From positions 62,001 to 126,000 of IMG/VR virus record IMGVR_UViG_3300031521_001337: a stretch of 64,000 bases of DNA, one strand, 5' to 3'. Positions 6,160 through 28,920 of this stretch are shown in pieces; the first letter of the stretch is position 1, and every line of letters starts with the position of its first letter. The notes under the pieces are model-generated. The model saw only the letters and a list, made by a program, of their open reading frames with translations. It did not search any database and had not been told where the DNA came from. Both the position numbers and the translations under genes were made by a program.

Positions 6160-6566
<407 letters not shown>

Positions 6567-11726: not shown

Positions 11727-11954
11727 ATGTTTATAACATTTTTAATCTGGTATTTTATCGGAGTAATATTATCAATATTCATGTTATCATTTGTTAATGA
11801 TTTGTGTGATCATGATTATGAAAAATGTGAAGTTGCCTGGGCTTTCATGAGTTGGATTGTTGTAATTTTTAGTATTTATTACATTATTACAATATCAAAA
11901 ATATTTAAATGGAAACCAAGTTTAAAAAACTTATGGAAAAAGAAAAAGCAGTAA
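11727..11954 (+). CDS. small membrane protein
   Basis: Two hydrophobic segments. Confidence 0.6.
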   Translation: MFITFLIWYFIGVILSIFMLSFVNDLCDHDYEKCEVAWAFMSWIVVIFSIYYIITISKIFKWKPSLKNLWKKKKQ

Positions 11955-14464: not shown

Positions 14465-14583
14465 AATTTATTGAAAGATATAACAATAAGAACAGTTAGA
14501 TCATTATTTTATCATAAATTGATAATTTATGGGTTTTTATTGTTCTTATTGTTGTACTTTTGTAGTCCCAATAAAAAATATAT

Positions 14584-14655
14584 GTTCGGGTCTTATAGCG
14601 GCTAGTAATCTGGGTTTTCATCCCAGCAAGCGGGGTTCGATTCCCCGTCCGAATA
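14584..14655 (+). tRNA. tRNA-Glu(TTC)
   Basis: Cloverleaf; CTGGG-TTTTCAT-CCCAG. Confidence 0.9.
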
Positions 14656-14676
14656 CAAAATATTGATAAATTAATT

Positions 14677-14895
14677 ATGATAGAAAAAAAATATTATTTA
14701 CTTAGAATAAGTAATCGTGAAACACCAAGACTTATTTTTAAGTCTTCAAGCATATCAGATCTTAATAAAGTTTCAAGATATTTAAAAGATGCTATAGAAG
14801 ATCATGAAATATTTTTTATTACTGAAAATGATAGTAAAGATGTAATTGAAGAATGGATTTCTGAAGAATTAATTTGTGAAATATTCAATAATTAA
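14677..14895 (+). CDS. hypothetical protein
   Basis: 72 aa ORF between tRNAs. Confidence 0.55.
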   Translation: MIEKKYYLLRISNRETPRLIFKSSSISDLNKVSRYLKDAIEDHEIFFITENDSKDVIEEWISEELICEIFNN

Positions 14896-14898
14896 AAT

Positions 14899-14971
14899 AT
14901 AGATGTGGCGCAGTTGGTAGCGTTCTTGCTTTGGGAGCAAGGGGTCGTGAGTTCGAGTCTCACCATCTATA
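14899..14971 (+). tRNA. tRNA-Pro(TGG)
   Basis: CTTGC-TTTGGGA-GCAAG. Confidence 0.93.
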
Positions 14972-14981
14972 CAAAATATAT

Positions 14982-15054
14982 CGCGAAGTGGTAGCAGTGG
15001 TAGCTCGCAAGGCTCATAACCTTGAGGTCGGGGGTTCAATTCCCTCCTTCGCAA
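14982..15054 (+). tRNA. initiator tRNA-fMet(CAT)
   Basis: C1:A72 mismatch; CAAGG-CTCATAA-CCTTG. Confidence 0.9.
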
Positions 15055-15060
15055 CTAAAT

Positions 15061-15149
15061 ATCCTCAACTCTGTGACCATAAATCGGCAATTGATAATGG
15101 TTCAAACAAAGCACAAGACAGCCGAAACTTGATTGCGGCAGAGAGGGAT
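15061..15149 (+). ncRNA. candidate three-way-junction RNA with kissing loops
   Basis: ATCCTC..CTCTG/CAGAG.AGGGAT closing stem; two hairpins with complementary loops GGC and GCC. Confidence 0.5.
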
Positions 15150-15157
15150 GTTAAAAT

Positions 15158-15236
15158 AAAGGGTGGTAGATAGCAATTATGTGTAATTCATAAACGTATA
15201 AGTTGATTAAAGTTCTACTATATACCCAACCCTTTT
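15158..15236 (+). ncRNA. candidate hairpin RNA or terminator
   Basis: AAAGGGT..GGTAGA/TCTACT..ACCCTTT pairing followed by T run. Confidence 0.35.
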
Positions 15237-15257
15237 TAAAACTTAAACAAATAGATA

Positions 15258-15473
15258 ATGGATTGGATTTTAATGATTTTAAACTTATACGCTTATTATT
15301 TGATAAGTAATAAGAGAATAATTGGCTTCATACTTGGAGCAATTGGAAGTATTCTTGGAATAATATTATTCTGGAATATGATTTCAATAGTTATAATGTA
15401 TTTAGCATTTACAGTTTTAAATATTAGAGGATTTTTAAAATGGAATAAAAAATTAAAAGAAGAAACAGTCTAG
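15258..15473 (+). CDS. small three-TM protein, possibly PnuC-like half-transporter
   Basis: W..L...Y.L...K..IGF..G...........Y......N..GF.KW pattern. Confidence 0.45.
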   Translation: MDWILMILNLYAYYLISNKRIIGFILGAIGSILGIILFWNMISIVIMYLAFTVLNIRGFLKWNKKLKEETV

Positions 15474-15474
15474 G

Positions 15475-15608
15475 TCCAGAGGGCTCTAATTGTATATGAG
15501 GGAAGTGACTCTGGAATTCCTCCGTATTTAAAGTATTGGTGAATGTTATATCTAGAATGGTAATTTATTATCGTCGATGATGTTTCTATAATATACAATC
15601 GCAATTAG
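15475..15608 (+). ncRNA. candidate pseudoknotted RNA
   Basis: TCCAGAG/CTCTGGA stem; loop ATTGTATAT is perfectly complementary to ATATACAAT at 15591. Confidence 0.45.
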
Positions 15609-15629
15609 TATATCTTTTTTAAAATATAA

Positions 15630-15792
15630 AATATTGAAATGTTGGCTTGGAAGCAGCAATCATCTAAAGAGTGGGACGAGACTACGTTGATAAACCAATT
15701 CAAGTTGGAATTTAATGTGGTAAGGTAAGTTGGAGGTCACCCCGTAACTGGTAAGGACTGAAATCCCTTTGGCGTAATAGCACATCAATATT
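15630..15792 (+). ncRNA. 23S rRNA H43-H44 (uL11-binding GTPase-associated centre) mimic with 99-nt insertion
   Basis: ATGTTGGCTTGGAAGCAGCAATCATCTAAAGAGT...GCGTAATAGCACA, closed by AATATTGA/TCAATATT. Confidence 0.75.
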
Positions 15793-15802
15793 TTTAAAAA
15801 TT

Positions 15803-15958
15803 AAATGAGTAACATCCGAGAATGGTCGGTGAGTCAGGTAAGAGGGGAACCCAATGCTGACTTAGAATGAGGAATTAAGTCCAGATATCCCTAACGAAAA
15901 GATGTAGGTGTAGTCCCGTGGATAACATGCGTGTAATTGTCCCTCCCGTTACTCATTT
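15803..15958 (+). ncRNA. candidate structured ncRNA (~156 nt)
   Basis: 11-bp closing stem AAATGAGTAAC/GTTACTCATTT; internal CCGA/TCGG and TGAGTCAG/CTGACTTA stems. Confidence 0.6.
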
Positions 15959-15965
15959 TTAAAAT

Positions 15966-16038
15966 GCTCCAGTAGCTCAGTGGATAGAGCATCGGTTTTC
16001 TAAACCGAGGGTCGCTGGTTCAAGTCCAGCTTGGAGTA
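15966..16038 (+). tRNA. tRNA-Arg(TCT)
   Basis: TCGGT-TTTCTAA-ACCGA. Confidence 0.95.
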
Positions 16039-16039
16039 C

Positions 16040-16525
16040 AACTAGGTTTATTTATTATTAGCTACGATAGAATAAACCATCAAAGATGGGGTTGTAGTCT
16101 TAACTTATAAAGTTATTGCCCATACCAATTAACAAAACTAACTAGGGTCGAGCTACATTTTGCCACTGTTAGTATTAGACTTAGAGATCAGAGGTAGCCG
16201 TGACTACTCTAAGTTGAACAAATAAAATCTCTTTAATTGAAGCAAAACGGTAACCAGGGGGAGACACCCAACCCAATAAGGGGTAAGGACGAAAGTTGAG
16301 TACGTAGGTTATAAACCATAGCAGTGGTTGAATGTTTTGGTAAATGTAGTTATGATATGGTTAGTGTTCGCAGAAAAGCCTTCGTTATGACCTAAGTCAA
16401 TATAATTATTCCACTCTGCTTAAAGTGAATAAAGAGATTTTTTATGCCTACTTATACCCTCAAGCTTATATCTTGTTGAAAGGTTATTTGGTGACAGCCT
16501 GGTTCAATCCCAGGAGTAGGTACAA
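16040..16525 (+). ncRNA. candidate large ornate ncRNA (~480 nt)
   Basis: Several long-range helices of 9-12 bp, some crossing; ends in a T-arm-like hairpin CCTGG-TTCAATC-CCAGG. Confidence 0.55.
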
Positions 16526-16526
16526 T

Positions 16527-17006
16527 ATGGAAAGAAGTAAAAATGAATTATTAGCAATTGAAAAAGGATATAAAATAACTATAAATGGTGATATTTTAAA
16601 TCCTAAAGAAAAAATTTTAACAGGAACTATTTATAATAAAAATTATAAAAAATTTAATATTAGATTAAATGAAAAACATATTCCAGTTAAAGTACATAGA
16701 TTACAAGCATATCAAAAATTTGGAGAAATTATTTTTAACGAAGATATAGTAGTTAGACATTTAGATGGTAACGGATTAAATAATTCTTGGGATAATATTG
16801 AAATTGGATCATATAGTGATAATATGATGGATAAACCTAAAGAAGAAAGAATTAGAATTGCATCTAATGCTAATAAAAAATATTCTGATGAATTAGTTTT
16901 AGAAATTAAAGCATACCGAAATTTAGGGCATACTTATAAAGAAATTATGGAAAAATATAATATTAGTAGTAAAGGAACCATTAGTAATATTATTAATAAT
17001 AGATAA
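16527..17006 (+). CDS. HNH homing endonuclease with C-terminal HTH
   Basis: KVHRL.AY...VVRHLDGNGLNN..DNIEIGSYSDN; ATG at 16527 preferred over GTG 16425, which overlaps structured RNA. Confidence 0.85.
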   Translation: MERSKNELLAIEKGYKITINGDILNPKEKILTGTIYNKNYKKFNIRLNEKHIPVKVHRLQAYQKFGEIIFNEDIVVRHLDGNGLNNSWDNIEIGSYSDNMMDKPKEERIRIASNANKKYSDELVLEIKAYRNLGHTYKEIMEKYNISSKGTISNIINNR

Positions 17007-17079
17007 GCCCGTATGGTGAAGTGGTTAACATTCGATTCTGCAAAAATCGCACGCCCAAGTTCGAATCTTGGTATGGGCT
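17007..17079 (+). tRNA. tRNA-Cys(GCA)
   Basis: CGATT-CTGCAAA-AATCG; U73. Confidence 0.92.
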
Positions 17080-17095
17080 CAAAATAAATAAAATT

Positions 17096-17311
17096 ATGAA
17101 ATCAGGAGATATAGTTAAAATGACTAAATCCTTTAAAAGAGGATTAATTGCAAATGATTGTAAAGATCATGTTGATGAATTTGGAAAGTGTATAGGTATA
17201 GTTGAAGATTTAGTATATCCTGATGGTGAAGGTGATGAATGGAATGTTAGATGGTTACCTTCTAAATTAAGATATGGTTATTCTCCAGAAGAACTTGAAA
17301 TAATTAAATAA
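17096..17311 (+). CDS. hypothetical protein (SH3/KOW-like)
   Basis: MKSGDIVKM...; start moved out of tRNA-Cys. Confidence 0.6.
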   Translation: MKSGDIVKMTKSFKRGLIANDCKDHVDEFGKCIGIVEDLVYPDGEGDEWNVRWLPSKLRYGYSPEELEIIK

Positions 17312-17476
17312 AACCAGTAGGAACAACTGAACGTAGATTGAGAAGGCCTAGGAACTTAATAACGAAAGTTTGATAGTTTATGCATACTTGTCTCGCGCAT
17401 CGTATTTGGCGCATGGGTATTATTAAGTTTTTACCAGTTTGGCATACAATCACCGTGGCACAAAAAACTTTAAATC

Positions 17477-17550
17477 GGGGTCTTAGCTCATTTGGCTAGA
17501 GCGATTGCTTTGCAAGCAATAGGTGGTGGGTTCGAAACCCACAGATTCCA
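17477..17550 (+). tRNA. tRNA-Ala(TGC)
   Basis: G3:U70; ATTGC-TTTGCAA-GCAAT. Confidence 0.95.
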
Positions 17551-17642
17551 CTCTTCGAAGAAGCTAATTGGTAAACAGCAATTAGTTATCATTGGAAAGC
17601 TATTAAGGATGTCGAAAGTCTAAGAATAGTTACTGTTTAACT

Positions 17643-17716
17643 GTTTGCGTAGCTCAGTTGGTTAGAGCACCAGCCTGATAAGTTGGGGGTCACAGGTTCA
17701 AGTCCTGTTGTGAACA
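17643..17716 (+). tRNA. tRNA-Ile(GAT)
   Basis: CCAGC-CTGATAA-GTTGG; GU-rich acceptor stem. Confidence 0.9.
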
Positions 17717-17774
17717 CAAAGTAGATATAAAATTAGTATTGGTTCTACAAGATAGTACTGTCTACAATACAACC

Positions 17775-17846
17775 GAGAGCATAGTTCAGTGGTGGAACGC
17801 TTCCCTTACATGGAAGATGTCGGGAGTTCAATTCTCTCTGCTCTTA
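17775..17846 (+). tRNA. tRNA-Val(TAC)
   Basis: CTTCC-CTTACAT-GGAAG. Confidence 0.92.
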
Positions 17847-17899
17847 CAAATAAATTAGGTAAAATTGGGATGATTACCCAAGTTAAATGAAGATGGAAA

Positions 17900-18469
17900 A
17901 TGATTTTAAAACAAGGAATGAAGGTTTTATTAAAACCTAAAGAATGGTATGATGAGAAAAAAGCAGATTTCTTGCCAATATTGACTAATGATATGGAACA
18001 ATATTTTGGTAAAGAACATATTATAAAATCTGTAAAAATTGGAGGATCTCAATTAAGAGGTGTTGAATTATTTAATATTGAAAGTGATTCTAAAGGTTGG
18101 TATTTCTCAATAGATATGGTTGATAAGTATTATGATATGCCAATTACAACTAATGGATATGATAGATTAGTAAGTATGTATAATACCATAGGATCTAGTT
18201 TAACTTCAGGTACTTCAAGTATGTCAAGTGCTTTAAGTATGTATGAACAACTTTCATTACAAGAATTGAGAGGTAGAATGAGAGGTACTACTGATTTTAG
18301 TGGATTATTAGGTTTTTCAAACAGTCTTTCAATTCACGTTAAAGCATTTATACAATATGTTGAGAAGTTTGTTCCATTTGCTTATGATGGAGTTGTAACT
18401 TATACAGATAATGAAAATAATTCATTTACTTTAACACAGTTATATGAGAGATTCACTACCAACAGTTAA
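17900..18469 (+). CDS. paralog array 2, member 1
   Basis: KQGMKVLLKPKEWY...DMEQYFGK...; C-terminal F..Y.EK...NNSFTL..LYE. Confidence 0.8.
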   Translation: MILKQGMKVLLKPKEWYDEKKADFLPILTNDMEQYFGKEHIIKSVKIGGSQLRGVELFNIESDSKGWYFSIDMVDKYYDMPITTNGYDRLVSMYNTIGSSLTSGTSSMSSALSMYEQLSLQELRGRMRGTTDFSGLLGFSNSLSIHVKAFIQYVEKFVPFAYDGVVTYTDNENNSFTLTQLYERFTTNS

Positions 18470-18902
18470 GTATAAAGTAGGACAATGTGTACATTTGAAA
18501 TCTAAAGATTGGTTTGATGTACATGACGATAGAGGTGATGTTAGATTAGGTTTAGCTAGTGATATGAGACCTTATTTTGGAACAATTCAAGTTATTACTC
18601 ATGTTGATACAAATTATTGTGGATATGTTTTAGCAGGTTGCAGTGGTGGTAGTGATAATGAATATACGTATACTGATCAAATGATTGATAATATAAAAAC
18701 TTCTGAATTAATACATAGACATGAAAATATAATTGATCCTGATCAATATTCATGGGATGTTATTACTCCAAATAAATTTCCTGAACATCTTGAAAAGAAT
18801 TATACTCCATTTCTTGATGGTGAAACTTTAACATTTACTGATAAAGATAATAATTCATTTACTTTAAAAGAAATATTTGATGAGTTCTTTAAAGAAGTAT
18901 AA
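18444..18902 (+). CDS. paralog array 2, member 2
   Basis: KYKVGQCVHLKSKDWF...DMRPYFG...EKNYTP...NNSFTLKEIF. Confidence 0.8.
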   Translation: MRDSLPTVKYKVGQCVHLKSKDWFDVHDDRGDVRLGLASDMRPYFGTIQVITHVDTNYCGYVLAGCSGGSDNEYTYTDQMIDNIKTSELIHRHENIIDPDQYSWDVITPNKFPEHLEKNYTPFLDGETLTFTDKDNNSFTLKEIFDEFFKEV

Positions 18903-19254
18903 AATTGGTGATGTTGTTAGACTAAAATCATTAGCTTGGTTTGATGAAATGATGGAAAATCATGTAGCTGTTGAAGGTGGATTAATTTATGATATGCGTC
19001 AGTTTTTTGGTAAAGAACAAGTAATTTCAAATAATGAAGCAGGTTATGCATATATACCTTTATATCACTTAGTAGATGATCCACGTCATTGGAATTTTAG
19101 TAATGATATGATTGAAGGAATAGCTTCATCTTTTCCTGAATATGTAGAAAAGAATTATACACCACTTATTGATGAAGGTGGATTGTATTTTATAAATGAT
19201 AATAATGATGCATATAGTTTAAAAGAAATATATGAGAGGTACAGAGCGATATAA
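18877..19254 (+). CDS. paralog array 2, member 3
   Basis: KYKIGDVVRLKSLAWF...DMRQFFGK...EKNYTP...NDAYSLKEIY. Confidence 0.8.
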   Translation: MMSSLKKYKIGDVVRLKSLAWFDEMMENHVAVEGGLIYDMRQFFGKEQVISNNEAGYAYIPLYHLVDDPRHWNFSNDMIEGIASSFPEYVEKNYTPLIDEGGLYFINDNNDAYSLKEIYERYRAI

Positions 19255-19768
19255 AGTAGGTGATAAAGTATTAATGCAGTCTTTAGAATGGTTTGAAGAT
19301 GCATTAAATGGACGAGGTCCAAGACCTCTTTTTGGAGTTGTTGAAAGCATGCGTAGATTGTTTGGAAAAGTTCAAACAATTACTATGAGTAGTCAATCTA
19401 TGAATGATGAGGATAAATATAAAATATCAGGAGCTAATGAATTTAATATCAGTAATGATATGATTAGAGGTTTACTTGAAGAATTTAGTCAAACAATAAC
19501 TCATGATGGTAGATCAGAATATGTTCATAATGATGTTCTTGCTAGTATGACACCATCGTCAGGAACTTATATCATTAATTATGGAGATGATCCAAGATTT
19601 GGGGGCACAGTAACAAGAACTAAATCATTTTTACAAGTATTAAAGGAGAATTACACTCCGACAATAATTGATGAAGAATTATTATTTGTTAATAAAGATA
19701 ATGAATCCTATACATTAGATGTTTTATATAATAAATTTCATAATACACCTTCAGGATTATTTGAATAA
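19232..19768 (+). CDS. paralog array 2, member 4
   Basis: RYKVGDKVLMQSLEWF...SMRRLFGK...KENYTP...NESYTLDVLY. Confidence 0.8.
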   Translation: MRGTERYKVGDKVLMQSLEWFEDALNGRGPRPLFGVVESMRRLFGKVQTITMSSQSMNDEDKYKISGANEFNISNDMIRGLLEEFSQTITHDGRSEYVHNDVLASMTPSSGTYIINYGDDPRFGGTVTRTKSFLQVLKENYTPTIIDEELLFVNKDNESYTLDVLYNKFHNTPSGLFE

Positions 19769-19788
19769 ACCACTTCGGTGGTTTCTTT
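19767..19788 (+). terminator. intrinsic terminator
   Basis: AAACCAC-TTCG-GTGGTTT then CTTT. Confidence 0.75.
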
Positions 19789-19818
19789 CTGCTATTAACA
19801 ATATTTAACTAAATATAT

Positions 19819-19849
19819 TTTGCACTTTCGAAAATTTTTTGTATCTTTG
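19819..19849 (+). promoter_or_regulatory. Bacteroidota sigmaA-type promoter
   Basis: TTTG-N19-TATCTTTG matches the -33/-7 consensus. Confidence 0.8.
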
Positions 19850-19874
19850 TACTATTAATATAATAGTTCAATTT

Positions 19875-20618
19875 ATGGAAAACAAATATTCAAAAGAAAA
19901 TTTAGAAAAAATTGTAAAAGAAAGTTATTCTTTTGCAGATGTGTGTAGATATTATGGGTTGCCTTTAACTGCTGGTAATTATGAAACAATTCAAACTAAG
20001 ATAAAAAAACATCAAATTAGCACAATTCATTTTAAAAGAAATTCTTCAAATGAAACTAAGAATGTGTACACTTTAGATACAATCTTTTGTAAAGATTCAG
20101 CATATACACAAACAAGTAAGTTAAGAGATAAATTATTAAAAAATAATCTAAAAGAACATAAATGTGAATGTTGTGATAATACTAAATGAATGGGAGAACC
20201 TATTCCATTAGAAACACACCACATAGATGGTATTAAAACTAATAATGAATTAAATAATCTTAAATTATTATGTCCAAACTGTCATGCTTTTACTGATAAT
20301 TATAAAGGTAAAAATGTTAAAGATAAAGTTATAGATGCATTATATTGTAATTCTTGTGGTAATACTATAACAAGTTCTTCTGTAAGTGGTTTATGTTTAA
20401 GTTGTTCTGCTAAACGAATAGCTAATGATTTTTACGATGAACTTGGTATAACTCGTGAATATTTAAAAACTTTAGTTCGCACAGAAACATTTATTAATAT
20501 TGGTAAATTATACAATAGATCAGATAATGCTATTAGAAAATGGTGTAAACATTTTAATATACCTTCTTCAAAGAAAGAAATAAATAGTTTGTCTGATGAT
20601 GAATGGGATAAAATATAA
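19875..20618 (+). CDS. HNH homing endonuclease with one in-frame TGA (20187..20189)
   Basis: ORFs 19839..20189 and 20190..20618 are one frame: CECCDNTK*MGEPIPLETHHIDG...N...NLKLLCPNCH. Confidence 0.8.
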
Positions 20619-20623
20619 TTTAA

Positions 20624-20696
20624 GGACTCTAAGCTAATCTGGTGAAAGCGTATGCCTGAAGAGCATGAGAGGTTGGATCAAAACCAACAGAGTCCA
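20624..20696 (+). tRNA. tRNA-Phe(GAA)
   Basis: TATGC-CTGAAGA-GCATG; atypical T-loop ATCAAAA. Confidence 0.88.
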
Positions 20697-20772
20697 CTTA
20701 CGGTTTAGGACCGTTGTTGTTTCGGCAACAAACCACTTGGTAGTGTCGCTACAACCAAGTGGTTATTTACAA

Positions 20773-20845
20773 GATCTGATAGCTCAACTGGTAGAGCATC
20801 GCCCTTTTAAGGCGGGGGTTCTGGGTTCAAATCCCAGTCAGATCA
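20773..20845 (+). tRNA. tRNA-Lys(TTT)
   Basis: TCGCC-CTTTTAA-GGCGG. Confidence 0.95.
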
Positions 20846-20861
20846 CAAAAAAAAAACAATC

Positions 20862-20950
20862 GGGGGTGTGGCGAAATTGGTAGCCGCAGCTAAATATAGG
20901 TTAGACCATAGCGGTCGTGAGACATGGGGGTTCGAAGCCCTCCGCCCCCA
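20862..20950 (+). ncRNA. tRNA-Leu-like RNA with a distorted, 7-nt-expanded anticodon arm
   Basis: Leu-type acceptor, D, variable and T arms; anticodon region GCTA-AATATAGGTTAGACCA-TAGC. Confidence 0.7.
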
Positions 20951-20956
20951 CTAAAT

Positions 20957-21035
20957 TCCCCAATGGCGTAATTGGCAGACGCGTATTCTTCGGAATATGT
21001 CGAGAGACATGTGGGTTCGAGTCCTCCTTGGGGGA
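20957..21035 (+). ncRNA. class II tRNA-like RNA with a UUCG tetraloop in place of the anticodon loop
   Basis: TATTC-TTCG-GAATA; D-arm GCG..CGC; variable arm GTC-GAGA-GAC; acceptor TCCCCAA/TTGGGGG. Confidence 0.7.
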
Positions 21036-21041
21036 GCAAAT

Positions 21042-21122
21042 ATGTCAGTATACAAGCGGTTAAAGTAGTTAGTCTCCAAAACTAATCCGAAAGGTTCGTG
21101 GGTTCAAATCCTACCTGATGTG
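21042..21122 (+). tRNA. tRNA-Trp(CCA) with long variable arm
   Basis: TTAGT-CTCCAAA-ACTAA; variable arm CC-GAAA-GG; G73. Confidence 0.85.
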
Positions 21123-21127
21123 CAAAT

Positions 21128-21210
21128 GCTTGAGTGGCGAAATGGTTAATACGCGTATGCCTTAGGAGCATATGTCGAAAGATGTGTCGGTTCGAGTCCG
21201 ACCTCGAGTA
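21128..21210 (+). tRNA. tRNA-Leu(TAG)
   Basis: TATGC-CTTAGGA-GCATA; class II. Confidence 0.95.
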
Positions 21211-21230
21211 CAAATATAAAAATAGATAAA

Positions 21231-21846
21231 ATGAAATGTTTAGATTATTTAAAAAGAATAGGAGTTAAATTAAATGGCCCTAATGTTCATAAAACTGCAA
21301 TGATTCAACTTTCAGTATGTGAAAGATATGACAAACGATGGAATAGTAAGAATTATTATAATCCTTACACTTTTCAATATGGTCGACGTAAAGAACATTC
21401 AGCTAAAAGTTGGAATCAGATTATAACTCCTCCGATTTTTCCTGATAAACCTAAATATAATTTTGAACGTAAAGAAATAGAAGTTGAAGGATTTAGATTT
21501 TTACAACCCGAGAGTTATATAGATGGTAAAACTTATTTTAAATATGAAGAAACTTCTTTTGTAAGAAAGAATTGGAGACATATTGAAAATGAATGTAAAT
21601 CATATTCTAAAAAATGTGAAGATTATTGGTATTTAAAAGGAATATTTGACGAAAATAACAATTAAGATGGCAGCTAAATGTGTAAAATTAGGATGTGTTC
21701 CTAGAATTAATAATTGGGGAATTAGTTGGTGTACCGAATGTGGTAAATTATTTCCTTTTAATCTAAATCACAAACCGATTAATAAGAATTTTCTTACAGA
21801 AGAATCTAAACTTATTTATGAGAATTATTTAAAATCAAATCAATAA
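21231..21846 (+). CDS. two hypothetical proteins (21231..21665, 21646..21846)
   Basis: ORFs between tRNA blocks. Confidence 0.6.
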
Positions 21847-21853
21847 ATTAAAT

Positions 21854-21943
21854 GGAAGAGTACTCAAGTGCTTTAAGAGGACGGTCTTGAAAATCGTTAG
21901 ATCGTGTAAAAGCGGTGCGTGGGTCGGAATCCCACTTCTTCCA
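21854..21943 (+). tRNA. tRNA-Ser(TGA)
   Basis: ACGGT-CTTGAAA-ATCGT; long variable arm; C19:G56 swap. Confidence 0.88.
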
Positions 21944-21956
21944 CAATAATTAAACT

Positions 21957-22042
21957 GGAAATAGTAACTTACGAGAAGTAAGGCTTGCCTGCTAAGCAAA
22001 GCGTTCGTTTAGGCGAATAGGAGTTGGAATCCTACATTTCCG
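21957..22042 (+). tRNA. tRNA-Ser(GCT), atypical D and T arms
   Basis: TTGC-CTGCTAA-GCAA; variable arm TTCG..CGAA; G73. Confidence 0.75.
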
Positions 22043-22061
22043 CAAATTAAAACATAAACAG

Positions 22062-23006
22062 ATGAAGATATTATTTATTGGTAATGGAATTTTTGGAGTT
22101 CCAGCATTAAAAAAATTACATGAAATTTATCAAGTTACAGTTATAACAACACCACCACGACGTTTCGGTAGAGTAGTACAAAATACACCTATTTATATTG
22201 CTGGTAAAGCTTTAGGTTGTTTAGTATATACTGCTAATGATATTAATGAACTTGAACATCGTATAATTAGTACTGATTTTGATTTAATTGTTGTTGCATC
22301 TTATGGACAAATAATTAAAATGAAAATACTTGATTCTGCTAAATATGGTGCAATTAATATTCATGGTTCATTATTACCGAAGTATAGAGGTGCTTCTTGT
22401 ATTCAAGCTGCTATTTTGAATAGAGATTCTGAAACAGGAGTTACATTTATTAAAATGAATGCTGCTGTAGATGCTGGAAGTATTATTACTCAACGTAAAA
22501 TGTATCTACCTGTAGGAATGGGATATATTATGCTTCTTGATCAATTATCAAACTTAGCTGCTGAAAATATTCTTCTAACAATCACTAAATATACTCGTGG
22601 AGTTATTTTAAGACCACAGATAGAAAGTGAAGCTACATATTGTTGTAAAATAACTAAAGATGATTGTTTACTTGATTTTAATAAAAATGTTGATGATGTA
22701 TATGCAAAAATGAAGGCATATGAATCGAATCACGGAGTATTCTTTTATTTACCAGATAACAATACTGAAGTTAAAATTAAAGATGCATGTATGTATACTG
22801 GACGTGTTAAAGGTGATTTCTTAGATGGAGAATTAATTTGTGTTGAAAATAATAAACTTTTTATAAATTGTAATAAAAGTAGTCTTCAGATTGTTTCATT
22901 ACAATTACCTAATAAAAAGGTTATGTCAGCTAGAGATTTTATTAATGGTCATAAGAAGTTAATCACACAATTTGCTGATTTACAAATAATTGTACATAAT
23001 GTATGA
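22062..23006 (+). CDS. fmt: methionyl-tRNA formyltransferase
   Basis: KILFIG...FG..AL..L, TTP.RR.GR, VASYG.I, INIHGSLLPKYRGA..IQ, ETGVT, VDAG.I; ~314 aa. Confidence 0.92.
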   Translation: MKILFIGNGIFGVPALKKLHEIYQVTVITTPPRRFGRVVQNTPIYIAGKALGCLVYTANDINELEHRIISTDFDLIVVASYGQIIKMKILDSAKYGAINIHGSLLPKYRGASCIQAAILNRDSETGVTFIKMNAAVDAGSIITQRKMYLPVGMGYIMLLDQLSNLAAENILLTITKYTRGVILRPQIESEATYCCKITKDDCLLDFNKNVDDVYAKMKAYESNHGVFFYLPDNNTEVKIKDACMYTGRVKGDFLDGELICVENNKLFINCNKSSLQIVSLQLPNKKVMSARDFINGHKKLITQFADLQIIVHNV

Positions 23007-23011
23007 AAAAT

Positions 23012-23095
23012 GGGATGTTATACCGTAGCTTATAGCGGGCCTGACTGTAACTTAGGTGTCTTCGGACTCGGGTGGTTTGACTCCACCACATCCCA
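23012..23095 (+). tRNA. tRNA-Tyr(GTA)
   Basis: CCTGA-CTGTAAC-TTAGG; variable arm GTC-TTCG-GAC. Confidence 0.88.
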
Positions 23096-23171
23096 CTAAA
23101 GTATTAGTCTTTAGACAATAAGCAAGATAAAAATAAGGAGTGGCACTTGCGTTCACCAATAATACTTTTCA

Positions 23172-23244
23172 CACGATGTAGCTCAGTTGGTAGAGTAGTC
23201 CTTTCATGCAGGACGGGTCAGGAGTTCAAATCTCTTCATCGTGA
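23172..23244 (+). tRNA. tRNA(CAT), elongator Met or lysidine Ile2
   Basis: GTCCT-TTCATGC-AGGAC; C1:G72 paired; unusual G37. Confidence 0.85.
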
Positions 23245-23262
23245 CAAACTAAACAAAATAAA

Positions 23263-23629
23263 ATGGATAAATTATTATTAGTACTTTCAATTCTTACATT
23301 ACCTGGAACATTGTTACTTATTACAGGTTTAGCAGATCTTTCTACTGTTAAAGAAGAGAAGGATAAAATAACGTATAATATTGCAGTATTTCTTAGATTT
23401 ACATCAATATTAACATTAGCATTAGCTATATTTGGAATTATTGCTTACATTTTAAATTAAAATTATGACTCTGTATAAAAAACTAAAGTGGACGTTCTTT
23501 GCAACACCACGACATGCAACTGAATGGGCTGAACAAAATGAAATGAGAATAACAGCTGCATTAGGAGTTGTTTTTGTAACATTTTTAATATTATTATTAT
23601 TTGGTCAACTTCCAACATGGGCTGGATAA
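23263..23629 (+). CDS. two small membrane proteins (23263..23460, 23465..23629)
   Basis: Hydrophobic ORFs; the second (54 aa) is below the ORF track cutoff. Confidence 0.55.
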
Positions 23630-23730
23630 ATGACGCTGCTCGATGAGTAGATGTCCTGGTGGGTCGCATTACCGAAATTGCGATAGTAGAACATGGGATA
23701 GCACTACTTAAAAAAGAGCCCTCCCACCAC

Positions 23731-23802
23731 GCCCGAGTAGCTCAGTGATAGAGCAATGGTATTGTAAACCATTTGTCGTCGGTTTGACCCCGACCTTGGG
23801 CT
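23731..23802 (+). tRNA. tRNA-Thr(TGT)
   Basis: ATGGT-ATTGTAA-ACCAT; A19:U56. Confidence 0.9.
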
Positions 23803-23819
23803 CTATTAAAAATAAAGAG

Positions 23820-24200
23820 ATGATTAAAAACATTATTAAAAGTTGGAAACATATTCCATATACATTGAAACATTATATAGCTTTTTTAAAACTTGAAAAG
23901 AAGTTATTAGGTTATTATAAGTATAAGTTTCATGATTTGGATAAAGTGTTAATGTATCTATTCATTCCTTTTATAGGAACACATCGAATTAAAATGATAC
24001 ATCGTAAGATTAATAGACATCATATTACATTTTATAAAACGAATTGTAATTATGAAGAAGCTATTATTGATTGGGAATGTTCAAGGTTTACAAAAGCTGA
24101 TAAACCTAGAACAGCAAGAGAAATTGTTAATGATAGACCTGATAAAAATTCAAGACACTATTATGAACTAGTAAGACAATTAAATAAATTTAATTTATAA
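23820..24200 (+). CDS. HD-like His-rich hypothetical protein
   Basis: HD..K, H...N.HH, E.IIDWECSR motifs; start moved out of tRNA-Thr. Confidence 0.6.
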   Translation: MIKNIIKSWKHIPYTLKHYIAFLKLEKKLLGYYKYKFHDLDKVLMYLFIPFIGTHRIKMIHRKINRHHITFYKTNCNYEEAIIDWECSRFTKADKPRTAREIVNDRPDKNSRHYYELVRQLNKFNL

Positions 24201-24202
24201 TT

Positions 24203-24765
24203 ATGGATAAAAATCAAAGTGATAATATTTGTCCTAATTGTGGGGCTATATTAAATGCAAATACAGCGTGTACAGATGGTACTAAAGCTGGACCTGGTGA
24301 TATTTCAATATGTTTGTATTGTCAATCAGTTAATATATTATCAGAACATATGACAACTCTTAAACTTTCACAAGAAGAATATGACGCTCTAGATGCTGAT
24401 ATAAGAGCTAAAATTGAAAAAGTCATAGAAGTAGCTAAGGCAATGAACATTAAATACAAAGAATAATGACAGTAAGAGAATTATATGAGTATTTAGGAGG
24501 ATTACCTTATAATAGTCAACATTGGGATGATGAAGTTGTTATTCCTTTAGACTATCCTTCTATGGGTAGTCGTATATCAGAACCTATTCTTCGAACTAAT
24601 TTTGGTTTTGATTGGGATTCTAGTAAATGTTTTATAGTAACAGAAGCCAAACTTGTAAAGAGTTTTAAAGCTCCTGGAACAGGTGAACCTTTAGAAGTAA
24701 TTGAATTAAAGAATTTGACTAAACCGTCGAATCCTAAAGATAAAAGTGTTGGAGAAACTTCGTAA
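24203..24765 (+). CDS. two hypothetical proteins (24203..24466 Zn-finger CPNC/CLYC, 24466..24765)
   Basis: Coupled ORFs. Confidence 0.6.
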
Positions 24766-24818
24766 GAAGACTGATCTAGTCTCGGTAGGCACGTGCACAG
24801 TGATCCTACCCGTACCAT

Positions 24819-24892
24819 GCAGTAATAGCTCAGTTGATCAGAGCACTCGCCTTCCAAGCCTGGGGTCGTGGGTTTGAACCCCACTTACTGCT
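24819..24892 (+). tRNA. tRNA-Gly(TCC)
   Basis: CTTCCAA loop; U73; anticodon stem has two mismatches. Confidence 0.8.
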
Positions 24893-24899
24893 CTTACAT

Positions 24900-24973
24900 G
24901 GTGACATTAGCTCAATTGGTAGAGCGCTGGTTTGTGGTGCCGGTCGTTGCGGGTTCGATCCCCGTGTGTCACA
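24900..24973 (+). tRNA. tRNA-His(GTG)
   Basis: CTGGT-TTGTGGT-GCCGG; encoded G-1, but A73. Confidence 0.88.
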
Positions 24974-24996
24974 CAAGAACAATTAAATTTTAAATT

Positions 24997-25362
24997 ATGT
25001 ATTACAAAGCAATTAAAAGAAATTCAGATGGTCGTGAATTGTATTCAGAAGTATTATGTCTTATTAAAGTAAAAGATTATGTGAAAGCAACACGTAATTA
25101 TACAGAAGTTATTCCAATTATTCCAGAAGTAATTGAAATTGTACCTGAAACAATGCGACAAATGGGTTGGAGGAGACAATCATTTTATTTAGATGATACT
25201 CAAGGAAATCAACACAATTTTTTCAATTGTGATAATTTTAGTCATTTAGCACAAATCTTTCGAGATAAAAAAGTTTTTGTGTATCATTCTCGTAGAGGTG
25301 GAGAAATCCGTCGCTCTATAGTTGGTACAATTGATGAAACCAATACAGAACATTGGTTTTAA
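24997..25362 (+). CDS. hypothetical protein
   Basis: 121 aa ORF. Confidence 0.65.
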   Translation: MYYKAIKRNSDGRELYSEVLCLIKVKDYVKATRNYTEVIPIIPEVIEIVPETMRQMGWRRQSFYLDDTQGNQHNFFNCDNFSHLAQIFRDKKVFVYHSRRGGEIRRSIVGTIDETNTEHWF

Positions 25363-25373
25363 CATGGTATAAA

Positions 25374-25394
25374 GGTTCGTAGCTCAGTGGTTAG
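25374..25394 (+). pseudogene. 5' fragment of a tRNA gene
   Basis: GGTTCGTAGCTCAGTGGTTAG with no anticodon or T arm following. Confidence 0.5.
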
Positions 25395-25417
25395 TAAACA
25401 AGTAAAAATTAGTAAAA

Positions 25418-25595
25418 ATGGATGAAATGAGAGTGTGTAAAACACATGGTGAAACAACATTTAGATCCAAATGAAAAAGATTTTGGAATATCAGCAAAAG
25501 GATATACTAGAGCATGAGAAAAAGTTAAAGAAGAATTAGATAAATGTATTATGGTCTGTGCTAATTGTCACAGAGAAATACATTCAGAAGAATAA
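25418..25595 (+). pseudogene. internally deleted HNH endonuclease remnant
   Basis: MDEMRVCKTHGETT joined out of frame to HLDPNEKDFGISAKGYTRA*EKVKEELDKCIMVCANCHREIH. Confidence 0.75.
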
Positions 25596-25596
25596 T

Positions 25597-25683
25597 GTAC
25601 ACGTTGCCTTAGTTGGTCGACAGGTCCAGGCTGTTAACCTGGTGAATAATATTCCACCGCAGGTTCGAATCCTGCCGTGTACG
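25597..25683 (+). tRNA. tRNA-Asn(GTT) with long variable arm
   Basis: CCAGG-CTGTTAA-CCTGG; GAAT-AAT-ATTC variable stem; G73. Confidence 0.85.
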
Positions 25684-25692
25684 CTTCTATAT

Positions 25693-25763
25693 TGACCGAT
25701 GGTGTAATGGTAGCACACATCCCTTTGACGGATGTCGCCCAGGTTCGAGTCCTGGTTGGTCAA
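25693..25763 (+). tRNA. tRNA-Gln(TTG)
   Basis: CATCC-CTTTGAC-GGATG; U1:A72. Confidence 0.93.
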
Positions 25764-25785
25764 CTAAATTATAAATTATAAAATA

Positions 25786-26064
25786 ATGAATGAATACGGT
25801 GAAGATTCAGAGTATAAATGGTATTTCTTTACAGGTTGTCTTATGGAATGTGCTAATGCAAGTTGTTGTCTTTATGGTGGTAATATTGGCTATGATAAAT
25901 TTAGTTTTAGTGATATGATAAAAGTAAATGGAACAAGAGGTTATCCTGGACAATGTTCAGCAACTGTTGGACTACTTATTATTGATGAACATTTAGATCA
26001 TCCTAAATTTATAGAATGGATGAATAACTTACCTGATGAAATAAGAAATAATTTACCTTTTTAA
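25786..26064 (+). CDS. Cys-containing hypothetical protein
   Basis: 92 aa; ends FIEW..LP.EIRNNLPF. Confidence 0.7.
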   Translation: MNEYGEDSEYKWYFFTGCLMECANASCCLYGGNIGYDKFSFSDMIKVNGTRGYPGQCSATVGLLIIDEHLDHPKFIEWMNNLPDEIRNNLPF

Positions 26065-26074
26065 AAATAGAATA

Positions 26075-26422
26075 ATGAGATTAGTAACAGTAAATTTAGA
26101 TATAGATCCTGAATCTGGACTTGAAGAAGAATTTGATGATGTACCACAATCAGAATGGTGATTTTGGACATGTTATTACAAAAGTGAACCCGATGGACTT
26201 TGTTGTGTATATGGTTATCAAGATCCAGATCAACCACATCAGTTAATATATAGTCAACAAATTGAAGTTTGTGGTCGATATGTTAGAGGTTTTGGTTCAT
26301 GTTGTTATGATCATGAATTATTTGCATTAACTAATAATACAGATAATTACGAATTTATATGTTGGTTTGAAAAACTAAGTTATGAAATTAGAAAAGAATT
26401 AATGATAATATTACCTTTTTAA
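26075..26422 (+). CDS. paralog of 25786..26064 with one in-frame TGA (26159..26161); absent from the ORF track
   Basis: MRLVTV...QSEW*FWTCYY...LCCVYG...FICWFEKLSYEIRKELMIILPF*. Confidence 0.7.
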
Positions 26423-26576
26423 TAAAAATATGATTAAAAAATTAATTAAATGGTTTAAGAAACCAAAGAAACAAAAGACTTGTTTTGCTGATGCAGATGG
26501 TATGTCACATGCAGGATGTGCTTCTATGCCTTCTTGTGATAAATGTTCTTGTTACAGATATAAACTGTAGTAAAAT

Positions 26577-26668
26577 GTCTAAGTGGCGAAGTTTGGCTGA
26601 AACGCATAAGACTTAAAATCTTATACCCTTTGTGGTGAACACCGTGGGTTCGATCCCCACCTTAGATA
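26577..26668 (+). tRNA. tRNA-Leu(TAA)
   Basis: TAAGA-CTTAAAA-TCTTA; class II. Confidence 0.92.
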
Positions 26669-26735
26669 CTTAAAAATACTAGTAAATCTTAATTTATTTA
26701 AGTTGGCTTCGTGGGTTAAAAGGAATCCACACTAT

Positions 26736-26809
26736 AGCTTGTTAGTTCAGTTGATTAGAATGCCGCCCTGTCACGGCGGAGGTCGCCGGTTTGAGCCCGG
26801 TACAAGCTG
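26736..26809 (+). tRNA. tRNA-Asp(GTC)
   Basis: CCGCC-CTGTCAC-GGCGG; G73; A19:U56. Confidence 0.93.
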
Positions 26810-26814
26810 CTTAG

Positions 26815-26841
26815 AAGGAGATCTATTAGGTCTCCTTTTTT
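26815..26841 (+). terminator. intrinsic terminator ending the tRNA island
   Basis: AAGGAGAT..GGTCTCCTT plus T run. Confidence 0.8.
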
Positions 26842-26856
26842 AATTTAAAAAATATT

Positions 26857-28920
26857 ATGAGGAAATTAAAACGGATATATTGGGAAATAGCTGAAGAAAA
26901 AGAAATTAAAGGTACTTATAAGATATCTGAAGATTATATTATCGAATATATAATTTTTGATAATAATTCTGTTCGTAAAATGAAAACTTTAATCGTATGT
27001 GAAAACAATAGATGTAATCATGTATCAGGTGATGAATCTATAAATAAACTTAGACAACATGCTGAACGAGATTTAGATCGTCGTATAAAACTTTATAATA
27101 TGAATGACGACTCACATGAAATCAATATATGGTTTCATGAATATAAACATAAACACAAATAAAATAGATTATGCAGAAAAAAACTTTAACACTTAAAGAT
27201 TTTGACGGTAAGGTATTAGTATCTTACTTAAAGGAAGATGATCGATTGCAATCAGCAATTGATTATAGATGCGAAGGTGGCCCAAAAGCTATCCTCGAAG
27301 TAGTAAAAGGTGAAAGAATCGGAGTAGTTGTTGCACTTGGTGCAGGAGTATTCGGATGGTCACTTTGTAACAAAAAGGATCAATTGGTTCCAGTTGCTGA
27401 AACATCTGGAGAAATTGTAGTTATTTCTGTACCTGGTGATACGTTTGACAAAGCAATTGGTTTAGACAAAGCACTTCAACGTGCAAAAATTGCTCAATCA
27501 TTGGATGCTGAAAACCGTGTGAGTTTCTACAAAAAAGTTCCGTACACTCTTTCAAACTTGTTTGAACAAATGACGGAGCGTGCTGAAATCTACTACGCAA
27601 ATAAGTAAGATGATTGTAATTAAAGGTAAAGAATTCGAAATGGTTCAGTCAAATACGACTGGACCATTTTTTGATTTAAGTTTACTTGTAAAAGTAAATG
27701 AGGGCAAGGACACTGAACGTACAGAAATGAAATTAGTAGCTCACGGATTACCTTTTGAAGTATGTATGCAGAAGATTGTAGGAATTAAAATGGCTGACAA
27801 AGATGGAGTTTATACTGTTGCTGAATTTATTGCAAAGTATAAAACTGTAGTTGATGAAGTTGCTAAATTAATTACTAATGAAGAGAAACCTAAAAAAGTA
27901 AAAGAAGATTCAGATGAATGATTCTATATTAATAATTAACGAAGAAGATCTATTACAAGATATTACTCTTGATCGTATAAATGATTGGATGGTTGAAGCA
28001 GGTGAAGATTTCCTAGATTATTGTGGAGATATAAATCATGAAAAATTTGCATATCAATTTATGGGTTTTGCTTTAGCAAGACACCCTGAATGGGGTCCAG
28101 AATTAATAGATTCTTGTAATGGAGATCATATTTATACACAATTAGTAGCACAAGTATATTATGATAAGTATGAACATTCTGGAGATGCTGGCGATTTATT
28201 TTATCAAGATTTATGTGATTTTATTAATCATACAACATATACTAAAAAGAAAGTTAATCAATTTTTAATTGAAGAAATAGATGGATAATATAACCTGGAA
28301 TAAATTAGGACAAGATGTTAATGCAAAACCAGTAGAAACTACTGAAGAAAAAAAAGTTGTATTAACACACGATGAAATTAAAATACAAGTTGGAAAACTT
28401 ATTGAACAATGCGATGCATTAGTAGCTTCGGCAAATACTTTATATAGTGAATTCATTAATAAAGAATTATATGATTCATTAGTAATGCTTGAATCAGGAC
28501 AGAAATCATTGAAAAAAGTATACATTAAAGAACCAATGGTCGATAAAGTATTAGAAAAAGCAGAAGCATGATAAAAATAATATTAATTGCATTAATTATT
28601 TTAATAGGATTATTTGCAATTTTAATTGATAAAGATTAATGGAAAATCCAGAATTAAGGTATTGGAAATGTATGATTGGTCCTATAGAAAAAGATTCATT
28701 TATGGGATTATCTGATGGAGCATTACGTGATTCAATAAAAGGTAGGTTCTTTTCATTGTTTAGTAAACATGCTGATAATTGTGTATCAAGTTGGGGTGTT
28801 GATGAAGAAAAGTTTGAACTCATTAGAGAAATCGAAAGATATTCAGTTGATGATTTAAGACATGTAATAACAGAATTAAAAATGATGAAAGATGCTGAAA
28901 GAGCAAATAATAGAGCATAG
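26857..28920 (+). CDS. run of hypothetical proteins (26857..27162, 27171..27608, 27610..27921, 27914..28288, 28281..28571, 28639..28920)
   Basis: Densely packed co-oriented ORFs, no motifs recognised. Confidence 0.6.

Follow-up and report, generated by a model that had tools for sequence, protein, structure and literature searches.

A putative stand-alone replica of the L11-binding domain of 23S rRNA in the tRNA island of a TGA-recoded phage

The DNA analysed here, referred to throughout as the window, is a stretch of 64,000 nucleotides (nt) corresponding to positions 62,001 to 126,000 of IMG/VR virus record IMGVR_UViG_3300031521_001337, a phage record of 213,486 bp and 29.6% GC that originates from peat metagenomes. 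Between positions 14584 and 26810, the plus strand of the window contains a tRNA island with 24 tRNA or tRNA-like genes, 22 open reading frames (ORFs) and approximately 2.4 kb of non-coding DNA. Within this island, at 15627-15793 (+), is an element that corresponds approximately to nt 1051-1108 (helices 42-44) of 23S rRNA, i.e., to the GTPase-associated centre (GAC) of the ribosome, and is called the GAC mimic below. Sequence comparison and covariation indicate that the predicted RNA is a stand-alone replica of the 23S L11-binding domain. A previous sequence-only reading of the same DNA had listed an rRNA mimic among the features of the island, and this claim was borne out by the presence of a covarying, phage-specific copy of 23S helices 42-44. 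As far as searches of Rfam 15 and the literature show, the GAC mimic and a family of tRNA-like RNAs with a GCU anticodon, also represented in the island, are undescribed, and within the island it is the mimic that might turn out to represent a new class.

The mimic is composed of a closing helix (P1) that resembles the top of helix 42 (H42), followed by H43, an inserted helix or domain (P3) and the loop of H44. Alignment of the window with E. coli 23S rRNA revealed a 91% match over the 33 nt from position 1054 to position 1086. When the consensus of 73 viral copies was compared with 48 distinct cellular rRNAs, identity was noted at 49 of the 50 positions from 1055 to 1104, many of which were fixed by the search pattern, the sole difference being A instead of U at position 1101, where a filter on the 3' side of the pattern forced a purine. 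The helix below 1055/1104 was free in sequence in the mimic and the closing helix ended approximately 8 bp below the junction. Since the consensus matches positions 1055-1104 and the helix below is free, the mimic corresponds to the classical 58-nt L11-binding domain plus an insert, the latter being a variable extra helix between positions 1091 and 1092. Contacts of the GAC fold (U1060-U1078, G1071, C1072, A1088, G1091-C1100 and C1092-G1099) were invariant or nearly invariant among the 73 copies, although many of the invariant positions were among those fixed by the pattern. A1095 was present in 98% of copies, G1071 and C1072 in 100% and A1067 in 86%.

Pairing in the mimic was evident from an alignment of 43 sequences, in which the covariation score was 0.502 compared with 0.142 after shuffling (reached in none of 500 trials) and 0.11-0.15 when pairing partners were slid. 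All eight pairs of the closing helix changed on both sides in this alignment. The pair equivalent to 1058-1080 occurred as GC (16 sequences), AU (15) or UA (10) and was never unpaired, three covarying pairs were noted in the helix that closes the insert and the U1060-U1078 mismatch was invariant, as it is in rRNA. The element is neither a 23S rRNA gene nor a fragment of one; the insert breaks the sequence GAGUG-CGUAAYAGCUCAC and the closing helix brings the element to an end. Moreover, the lower segment of H42, which in the ribosome is the site where L10 binds, is absent from the mimic and with it the L10(L12)4 stalk-base site.

Homologues of the mimic were found in cultured phages as well as in metagenomic viral contigs. 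BLAST comparison of island spacer B with cultured phages detected unannotated homologues in Aeromonas phage 4_4572 and in Pseudomonas phages pf16, UNO-G1W1, Milchi and Astolliot, in all five of which the homologue is situated within a tRNA array and on the tRNA strand. Matches of approximately 35 nt to the 5' block of the mimic were noted in unannotated DNA of several Erwinia pEa_SNUABM jumbo phages and of Serratia phage BF, which has no annotated tRNA within 1.5 kb of the match, and short matches to the pf16 copy were noted in unannotated DNA of Xanthomonas phage XacN1, Cronobacter phage GAP32 and a Paenibacillus phage. A degenerate pattern matched 111 IMG/VR contigs and yielded 77 unique full-length copies, in which 77-383 nt, including the variable insert, separated the 5' block from the 3' block. 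The insert was present in 95 of the 111 viral loci and none of these loci was rRNA-like, whereas the cellular matches listed (at least 120) included 111 with the uninterrupted rRNA form, nine close rRNA variants and none with an insert. The cellular scan, in which the matches listed were true 23S genes (GAGUG being a natural rRNA variant), served as a control and not as a survey of distribution. A tRNA was located within 1 kb of 76 of 115 mimic copies, and every tRNA within 1 kb (283 of 283) or within 5 kb (569 of 569) was on the same strand as the mimic. The genome under study contains a single copy, the locus of which was 100% identical across several independent assemblies and more than 20 sequencing runs. 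Comparison of the mimic with Rfam 15 returned no family at E<=10, and literature searches aimed at such an RNA found no description, which does not prove that none exists. In the course of these searches, plain 23S rRNA was also noted in four records filed under phages (CAKLQF020000045.1, CAKLQH020000072.1, OR845016.1 and OR850018.1), two of which are so annotated; these 23S sequences are likely host contamination and can mislead searches for rRNA-like phage elements.

Covariation across phages was also evident for a class II tRNA-like RNA with the anticodon loop CUGCUAA, located at 21956-22043 (+) and referred to here as the GCU tRNA-like RNA. When 22 nt of its anticodon arm were used as an exact anchor, nine other viral contigs matched, all within tRNA arrays, but no member of the family was called by ARAGORN or by the Rfam tRNA model. 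Among eight distinct sequences, 93% of cells in the alignment were paired, 14 pairs changed on both sides and the covariation score was 0.607 compared with 0.214 after shuffling (0 of 500) and no more than 0.13 for slid partners. With class II tRNA-Ser(GCU) the RNA shares this anticodon loop and a long variable arm, as well as 7 bp in the acceptor stem and 5 bp in the T stem; it differs by a 4-nt linker between the acceptor and D stems and by a D arm composed of 5 bp and a loop of 5 nt. Its 7/5 arrangement of acceptor and T stems also sets it apart from allo-tRNAs, which are tRNAs with non-canonical cloverleafs of the 8/4 or 9/3 type. The 3' end was G-CCA in six of the eight aligned copies and G-CAA in the window copy. 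Given the GCU anticodon loop, the long variable arm and the G-CCA ends, the RNA probably serves as a tRNA-Ser of unconventional type that reads AGY codons, for which the island contains no other tRNA. In a relative from wastewater, ORFs differed from those of the window by 7-8% while the GCU tRNA-like RNA differed only by a 1-nt insertion in the loop of the variable arm. In other phage arrays, a ROOL RNA (305 bits; L247:3315-3883) was noted just upstream of a GCU tRNA-like RNA and a permuted transfer-messenger RNA (tmRNA; 87 bits; L250:1865-2178) adjoined another, observations that confirm phage tRNA arrays as hot spots for non-tRNA RNAs. The family also shows that a recurrent type of phage tRNA escapes standard tRNA finders, with consequences for counts of phage decoding capacity.

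Additional atypical RNAs were found in the part of the island between 20850 and 21123. The element at 20956-21037 (+; 28.2 bits with the Rfam tRNA model) is clearly paralogous to tRNA-Leu(UAG) at 21128-21211, but in it a 6-bp stem closed by UUCG takes the place of the anticodon stem-loop, and for this reason it cannot decode; a pattern scan for the UUCG arm found no homologous tRNA-like RNAs. Immediately upstream is a GC-rich class II tRNA-like RNA (20862-20951, +) that was called only by ARAGORN, as Tyr(AUA), and had no Rfam match at E<=1. Together with tRNA-Trp(CCA) at 21042-21123 (+), these elements form a cassette that is absent from the wastewater relative. The UUCG and AUA elements would appear to be non-decoding or odd-decoding paralogues, and neither of them, nor the GCU tRNA-like RNA, combined an RF00005 score with a decodable anticodon loop. 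The tRNA mimics of the sequence-only reading were thus recovered as several tRNA-like non-decoders, the UUCG element being one example. Unusually long variable arms were also noted in tRNA-Trp(CCA) (82 nt) and in tRNA-Asn(GUU) at 25597-25684 (88 nt), both of which are normally class I.

Conservation of other non-coding parts of the island was assessed from four relatives, i.e., the wastewater phage (contigs in two RNA-labelled runs), a 21.7-kb Logan contig (L259, from ERR14653892), a 954-bp ENA contig (L260) and a 1,986-bp JGI peat contig (L262). Module A1 (15062-15149, +), just 3' of the initiator-type tRNA, varied hardly at all among four variants whose flanks are different, the changes being confined to an apical hairpin and to a C-to-U substitution by which a G-U pair is retained. 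Module B1a (15474-15537, +), which starts right after the TAG stop codon of a truncated PnuC-like ORF inside the island (15258-15473), had one change in 64 nt compared with approximately 4% in the preceding ORF. By eye, interleaved pairings of UCCAGAG with CUCUGGA and GAGGGAA with UUCCUCC can be drawn at 15471-15537, making an H-type pseudoknot possible; a read-through signal, a terminator and a processing site are possible roles. Element C (16136-16370, +) consists of a conserved 5' block (16136-16236) and a 3' block (approximately 16330-16370) separated by a middle that was different in each of three relatives. For element K (23630-23730, +; 49% GC), which lies upstream of tRNA-Thr, no difference was listed in the first 57 nt for a relative in which the adjacent ORFs diverged by 7%. 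When A1 and C were used in exact-block scans, matches were confined to this phage in IMG/VR and to a single mosaic relative in JGI metagenomes. From these comparisons the A1, B1a and C blocks behave like functional modules. Covariation across related phages, the check suggested with the sequence-only reading, was strong in the GAC mimic and the GCU tRNA-like RNA, while A1, B1a, C, B3, D and K were conserved without it. Since the sequences of A1, B1a and C were too few for covariation, the comparison speaks for their conservation and any structure is putative.

The same relatives differed from the window in the presence or absence of larger segments. In the wastewater phage, position 15534 is joined to position 15956 and this phage therefore lacks both the GAC mimic and B3 (15794-15965, +), a GC-rich element with an 11-bp closing stem (z=-1.9) and no detected homologue; several tRNAs and ORFs are also absent or replaced. 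In L260, tRNA-Arg directly follows the PnuC-like ORF and spacer B is absent, while L259 contains the start of the mimic. A 10.4-kb stretch of L259 yielded no tmRNA or tRNA with ARAGORN, though it aligned at 82% across the tmRNA region of the window (6160-6566), and the initiator tRNA allele of L259 had many compensatory changes relative to that of the window. A contig from RNA-labelled run X23 that aligns with the middle of spacer C (approximately 16270-16310), with nine substitutions and three deletions, had a word depth of 650 compared with 50-110 for neighbouring X23 contigs of the relative, and could be either a highly expressed relative of the C element or an unrelated abundant RNA.

The spacers between tRNAs had been described as GC-enriched, self-complementary elements and the island as interleaved with many structured non-tRNA RNAs. 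Because the genome and an HNH gene of the island read TGA as sense, the spacers were re-scored accordingly, and by this count the 12,227 bp of the island are 15% tRNA, 65% ORFs (22) and 20% (2,430 bp) non-coding. GC contents were 51.5% for tRNAs, 27.2% for ORFs and 32.9% for non-coding DNA, so that the enrichment is real but modest; it was highest in spacers B, C, D, H, K and L (36-53%). Self-complementarity did not hold as a general property, since most folding energies were at the level expected by chance. Thus, z was about 0 for the whole spacers B and C, which are approximately 490 nt each and flank tRNA-Arg, and among 18 sub-elements that were folded, only H, a set of three tandem hairpins between tRNA-Phe and tRNA-Lys (20698-20772, +), was clearly beyond chance (z=-4.7, and -5.4 on the opposite strand), the rest ranging from -2.1 to +1. 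The GAC mimic itself folded at an unremarkable z of -0.6, and as the structure of this element is established by comparison, folding energy cannot settle the question of structure. The description of the spacers was therefore weakly true as worded, and support for structure or constraint in several elements came instead from comparison. Similarly, the spacers are not filled with structured RNAs, as most of their length is protein-coding (HNH endonucleases and small ORFs), but non-tRNA or atypical RNAs are present as a minority comprised of the GAC mimic, the GCU tRNA-like RNA, the UUCG paralogue and the conserved modules.

Searches of the spacers against Rfam at the gathering score, E<=1 and E<=10 returned only tRNA-like noise. 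Comparison of the spacers with the E. coli rrn operon, 120 rRNA loci of diverse phyla and 1 Mb of mimic-bearing phage loci returned matches only for the GAC region, spacer C had no match in E. coli and no homologues of B3, D, E, F, J, L or N were detected among cultured phages, rRNA loci or mimic-bearing phage loci. Coding features of the island include HNH endonuclease genes at 16527-17006 (+) and at 19875-20618 (+; one in-frame TGA at 20187-20189), as well as an HNH remnant with two in-frame TGA codons (25422-25595) that follows a 5' tRNA fragment (25375-25397), the two together occupying 25375-25595 (+). Another tRNA-like remnant (16441-16526, +), in which the acceptor and T arms are intact and the centre is aberrant, lies 4 nt upstream of the HNH start codon. 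Several tRNA-like pieces in the island look like debris of endonuclease-driven rearrangement. The tRNA genes are also interrupted by four tandem paralogous ORFs (17900-19768) for which neither Pfam nor PHROG gave a match and which have two motifs in common, K-[VI]-G-D..V.L[KQ]S..WF[DE] at the N-terminus and EKNYTP at the C-terminus; two further paralogous ORFs are located at 25786-26422.

The tRNA set of the island is complete with respect to amino acids. ARAGORN identified 24 tRNA or tRNA-like genes, all on the plus strand, with anticodons for all 20 amino acids, as had been claimed. The Rfam tRNA gathering score of 29 bits was reached by 21 of the 24, with scores of 39-72 bits, and tRNA-Tyr(GUA) at 23012-23096, while below this cut-off (22.9 bits), was called as a tRNA by ARAGORN; the earlier count of 23 canonical tRNAs is thus better given as approximately 22, with full coverage retained. 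The tRNA-Met at 14982-15055 (+) is a candidate initiator tRNA. It has a C1xA72 mismatch, and a mismatch at 1-72 is a hallmark of bacterial initiator tRNAs, but its anticodon stem (AGG/CCU) contains two G-C pairs instead of three consecutive ones. The claimed methionyl-tRNA formyltransferase (Fmt; 22062-23006, +) was confirmed by both Formyl_trans_N (PF00551, E=1.4e-23) and Formyl_trans_C (PF02911, E=1.3e-17) domains. A strong intrinsic terminator (26813-26845, +) is situated directly 3' of the last tRNA (Asp), and the island reads as a long run of genes on one strand that is closed by this terminator. Promoter-like sites were not above chance. Island megablast and Fmt tblastn searches found no relatives among cultured phages, and a scan of viral contigs for relatives of Fmt returned only an identical copy.

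The phage is TGA-recoded. Minus-strand ORFs of 2986, 2820, 1580 and 1559 codons contain 6-16 in-frame TGA codons each (for example, those at 138208-147165 and 147170-155629 of the genome), while most long plus-strand ORFs have none, and a 74-nt tRNA(UCA) with a Trp-like discriminator G is encoded outside the window on the minus strand (genome positions 30014-30087). Within the island, the HNH gene at 19875-20618 is split solely by the TGA at 20187-20189, across which the PHROG profile runs on and where the context fits tryptophan, and another in-frame TGA read as sense was noted at 26159-26161.

Genes near the island were considered together with the idea, put forward in the sequence-only reading, of a translation-protection toolkit. 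The tmRNA (6160-6566) and YqeY (28892-29263) on which this idea drew in part are present, but the bL12-like protein was not substantiated, as the ORF at 12414-12821 scored 21 bits against a Pfam cut-off of 25.9 and matched profile positions 4-35 of 67. Upstream of the island are an ORF for a bifunctional NMNAT/Nudix-like protein (8437-9336) and an ORF for a NAMPT-like protein (10247-11677), both assigned to salvage of nicotinamide adenine dinucleotide (NAD) and constituting, by analogy, a putative NAD-salvage pair of the kind that phages use against NAD-depleting immunity. An ORF for a PNKP phosphatase domain (11909-12409; PF25109, E=4e-19), located 2 kb upstream of the island, may have an RNA-repair function. 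Phage tRNAs are known to counter host immunity that targets tRNAs (PMC10264068, PMC11555353). A toolkit is consistent with the self-sufficient appearance of the gene set and with neighbours suggestive of tRNA repair and anti-defence, while the absence of key cassettes from relatives and the high ORF content of the spacers speak against it.

The explanation that we favour, with slightly better than even confidence in it as a whole, is that homing-endonuclease activity continually reshuffles a tRNA island from which accessory RNAs are also produced, one of them, the GAC mimic, being a trans-acting decoy that is likely directed at L11. Such reshuffling would account for relatives that differ by entire cassettes. 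The accessory RNAs would be co-transcribed with the tRNAs and probably set free by tRNA-processing enzymes, and the mimic would then adopt the fold of the ribosomal GAC and serve in trans as a decoy, or sponge, for some host factor by which this centre is recognised. Ribosomal protein L11 is the most likely target and the most direct candidate because it is the minimal domain for L11 binding that the mimic reproduces, not the site of L10; binding of L11 by the mimic is accordingly a prediction from sequence. Cells deficient in L11 do not activate RelA and exhibit a "relaxed" phenotype. Titration of L11 might therefore weaken L11-dependent activation of RelA and copy this phenotype, and translation would continue at the time when the phage fills the cell with tRNAs of its own. 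A broader proposal, possible but short of probable in our estimation, is that the mimic represents a new and widespread class of phage non-coding RNA, a trans-acting GAC replica issued from tRNA operons that captures L11 or another reader of the site (RelA, a release factor, a translational GTPase or an immune effector) and thereby rewires control of host translation. With respect to the earlier suggestion of a toolkit of replacements and decoys, the gene set, a true rRNA mimic and tRNA-like non-decoders were all found, while a decoy function is something that we still infer.

Several findings weigh against the favoured explanation. Position 1067, always A in rRNA, has G instead in the window copy and in 13% of copies overall, and without lower H42 the mimic does not reproduce the full stalk base. 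The apparent conservation of the mimic is inflated by the fixed positions of the pattern and the purine filter at 1101, its folding energy is ordinary and six other conserved elements show no covariation. Clustering of neighbouring genes identified no partner gene, with no protein family in more than 10 of approximately 110 mimic loci. One close relative is altogether without the mimic, which is therefore dispensable, and the RNA-labelled runs contain a relative as contigs only, with depth at the mimic reflecting real rRNA.

These points have to be compared with what can be said for other explanations, beginning with the origin of the elements. That the rRNA-like stretch arose by contamination or as an assembly chimera with host 23S rRNA has a negligible probability; records labelled as phage (Acinetobacter, Staphylococcus) do in some cases hold real rRNA, but the mimic includes only about 58 nt of rRNA, is interrupted by an insert seen in none of the cellular rRNA matches listed, has its own covarying closing helix and was recovered unchanged from independent assemblies. 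Contamination with host rRNA as the source of the mimic was on these grounds effectively refuted. A more serious contender, though still unlikely, is that the non-tRNA spacers are mostly debris, i.e., tRNA pseudogenes, broken endonuclease genes and junctions of exchanged cassettes that inherited their GC content from decayed tRNA-like sequence. The tRNA fragments and remnants that adjoin HNH genes (16441-16526, and 25375-25397 with its HNH remnant), the large insertions and deletions that separate relatives, the near-zero z of most spacers and the lack of detectable homologues of B3, D, E, F, J, L and N are all as expected for debris. This explanation is inapplicable, however, to the GAC mimic and the GCU tRNA-like RNA, both of which covary across unrelated phages, and it fits poorly with the A1, B1a and C blocks, which are more conserved than adjoining ORFs or tRNAs and have sharp borders beyond which the flanks are replaced.

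Other explanations accept the mimic as a functional RNA and differ as to its function. Improbable, but the foremost of these, is protection of ribosomes by a mimic that acts as decoy for a toxin of host immunity or of a competitor, or for a small molecule, that attacks the GAC or L11. In favour of such protection are retention of the loops that form the drug- and factor-binding cleft (A1095, G1071/C1072 and, for the most part, A1067), the nearby genes of counter-defence type (NAD salvage, PNKP-like) and the precedent of phage tRNAs that counter tRNA-targeting immunity (PMC10264068, PMC11555353). Variation of A1067 between A and G speaks against this role. Literature searches also found no bacterial defence effector that targets H43/H44, and we know of none. 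Considerably less probable is titration of release factor 2 (RF2) or L11 by the mimic such that reading of UGA by suppressor tRNA(UCA) is favoured in late genes. Many long minus-strand ORFs of the genome do use TGA as a sense codon and this tRNA is encoded, and mutations of the GAC (e.g., G1093A) and loss of L11 are known to alter RF1- and RF2-dependent termination, but the mimic occurs in many cultured phages that are not known to be recoded (pf16, GAP32, XacN1, Serratia BF) and is missing from a close relative. Equally doubtful is a role in cis, either as a processing signal in the tRNA transcript or as an r-protein-binding leader of a downstream gene. The constant location of the mimic on the tRNA strand and near tRNAs would suit a cis element, and there is precedent for mRNA leaders that imitate rRNA (the L10 leader of Rfam and others like it). 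On the other hand, the sequence 3' of the mimic is usually a tRNA or unrelated, with no conserved ORF, the near identity to rRNA is far above that of known leaders and the closing helix makes the mimic a self-contained domain.

Among the RNAs that accompany large phage tRNA sets, the mimic offers an advantage for questions of function, since it has an unmistakable template, the most studied small domain of rRNA, and hence a concrete candidate binding partner. The idea of a decoy is also open to bench testing because cultured phages carry the mimic (pf16 and 4_4572, with shorter matches in XacN1, GAP32 and Serratia BF). If the mimic does act as a sponge for L11 or another GAC factor, it would be the first rRNA-domain decoy known to us in a virus of bacteria, and the control that phages exert over host translation and the stringent response would gain a new layer.

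Among known systems, stable RNAs C and D of phage T4 are small non-tRNA RNAs that are co-transcribed and processed with the T4 tRNAs; by description they resemble the setting of the mimic, though no T4-type phage was among the sequence matches. Leaders of r-protein genes that mimic rRNA (L10 leader, RF00557) also imitate an r-protein site outside the ribosome, but they are cis-regulatory, precede r-protein genes and have a loose likeness to rRNA, whereas the mimic copies rRNA almost exactly and has no r-protein gene associated with it. Precedents exist for large phage tRNA sets, for HNH endonucleases inside such sets and for adjacent large non-coding RNAs such as GOLLD and ROOL (PMC12286853). 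Like the mimic, GOLLD and ROOL are structured non-tRNA RNAs of phages or prophages that adjoin tRNA arrays (PMC12286853), but the mimic is much smaller and has an obvious cellular template in the ribosome; models for GOLLD (RF01998) and ROOL (RF03087) had no match in 15040-16540 at E<=10 or in 14000-27500 at E<=1. As in phage arrays that replace tRNAs cleaved by host defences (PMC10264068, PMC11555353), the tRNA set of the island is large, a few of its anticodon arms are unusual and a PNKP-phosphatase-like gene is close by; the island differs from these arrays in its non-decoding members (UUCG tetraloop). The closest likeness of the mimic is to the 23S GAC itself (the 58-nt L11- and thiostrepton-binding domain, nt 1051-1108), of which it retains the U1060-U1078 mismatch, the H43 loop, the UUAAAGAGUG junction and the GUAAUA loop of H44. 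It departs from this template by the 1091/1092 insert, A instead of U at 1101, the lack of lower H42 and a freely varying closing helix in place of the top of H42, and by being a free-standing, phage-encoded RNA of approximately 130-440 nt that is situated among tRNAs.

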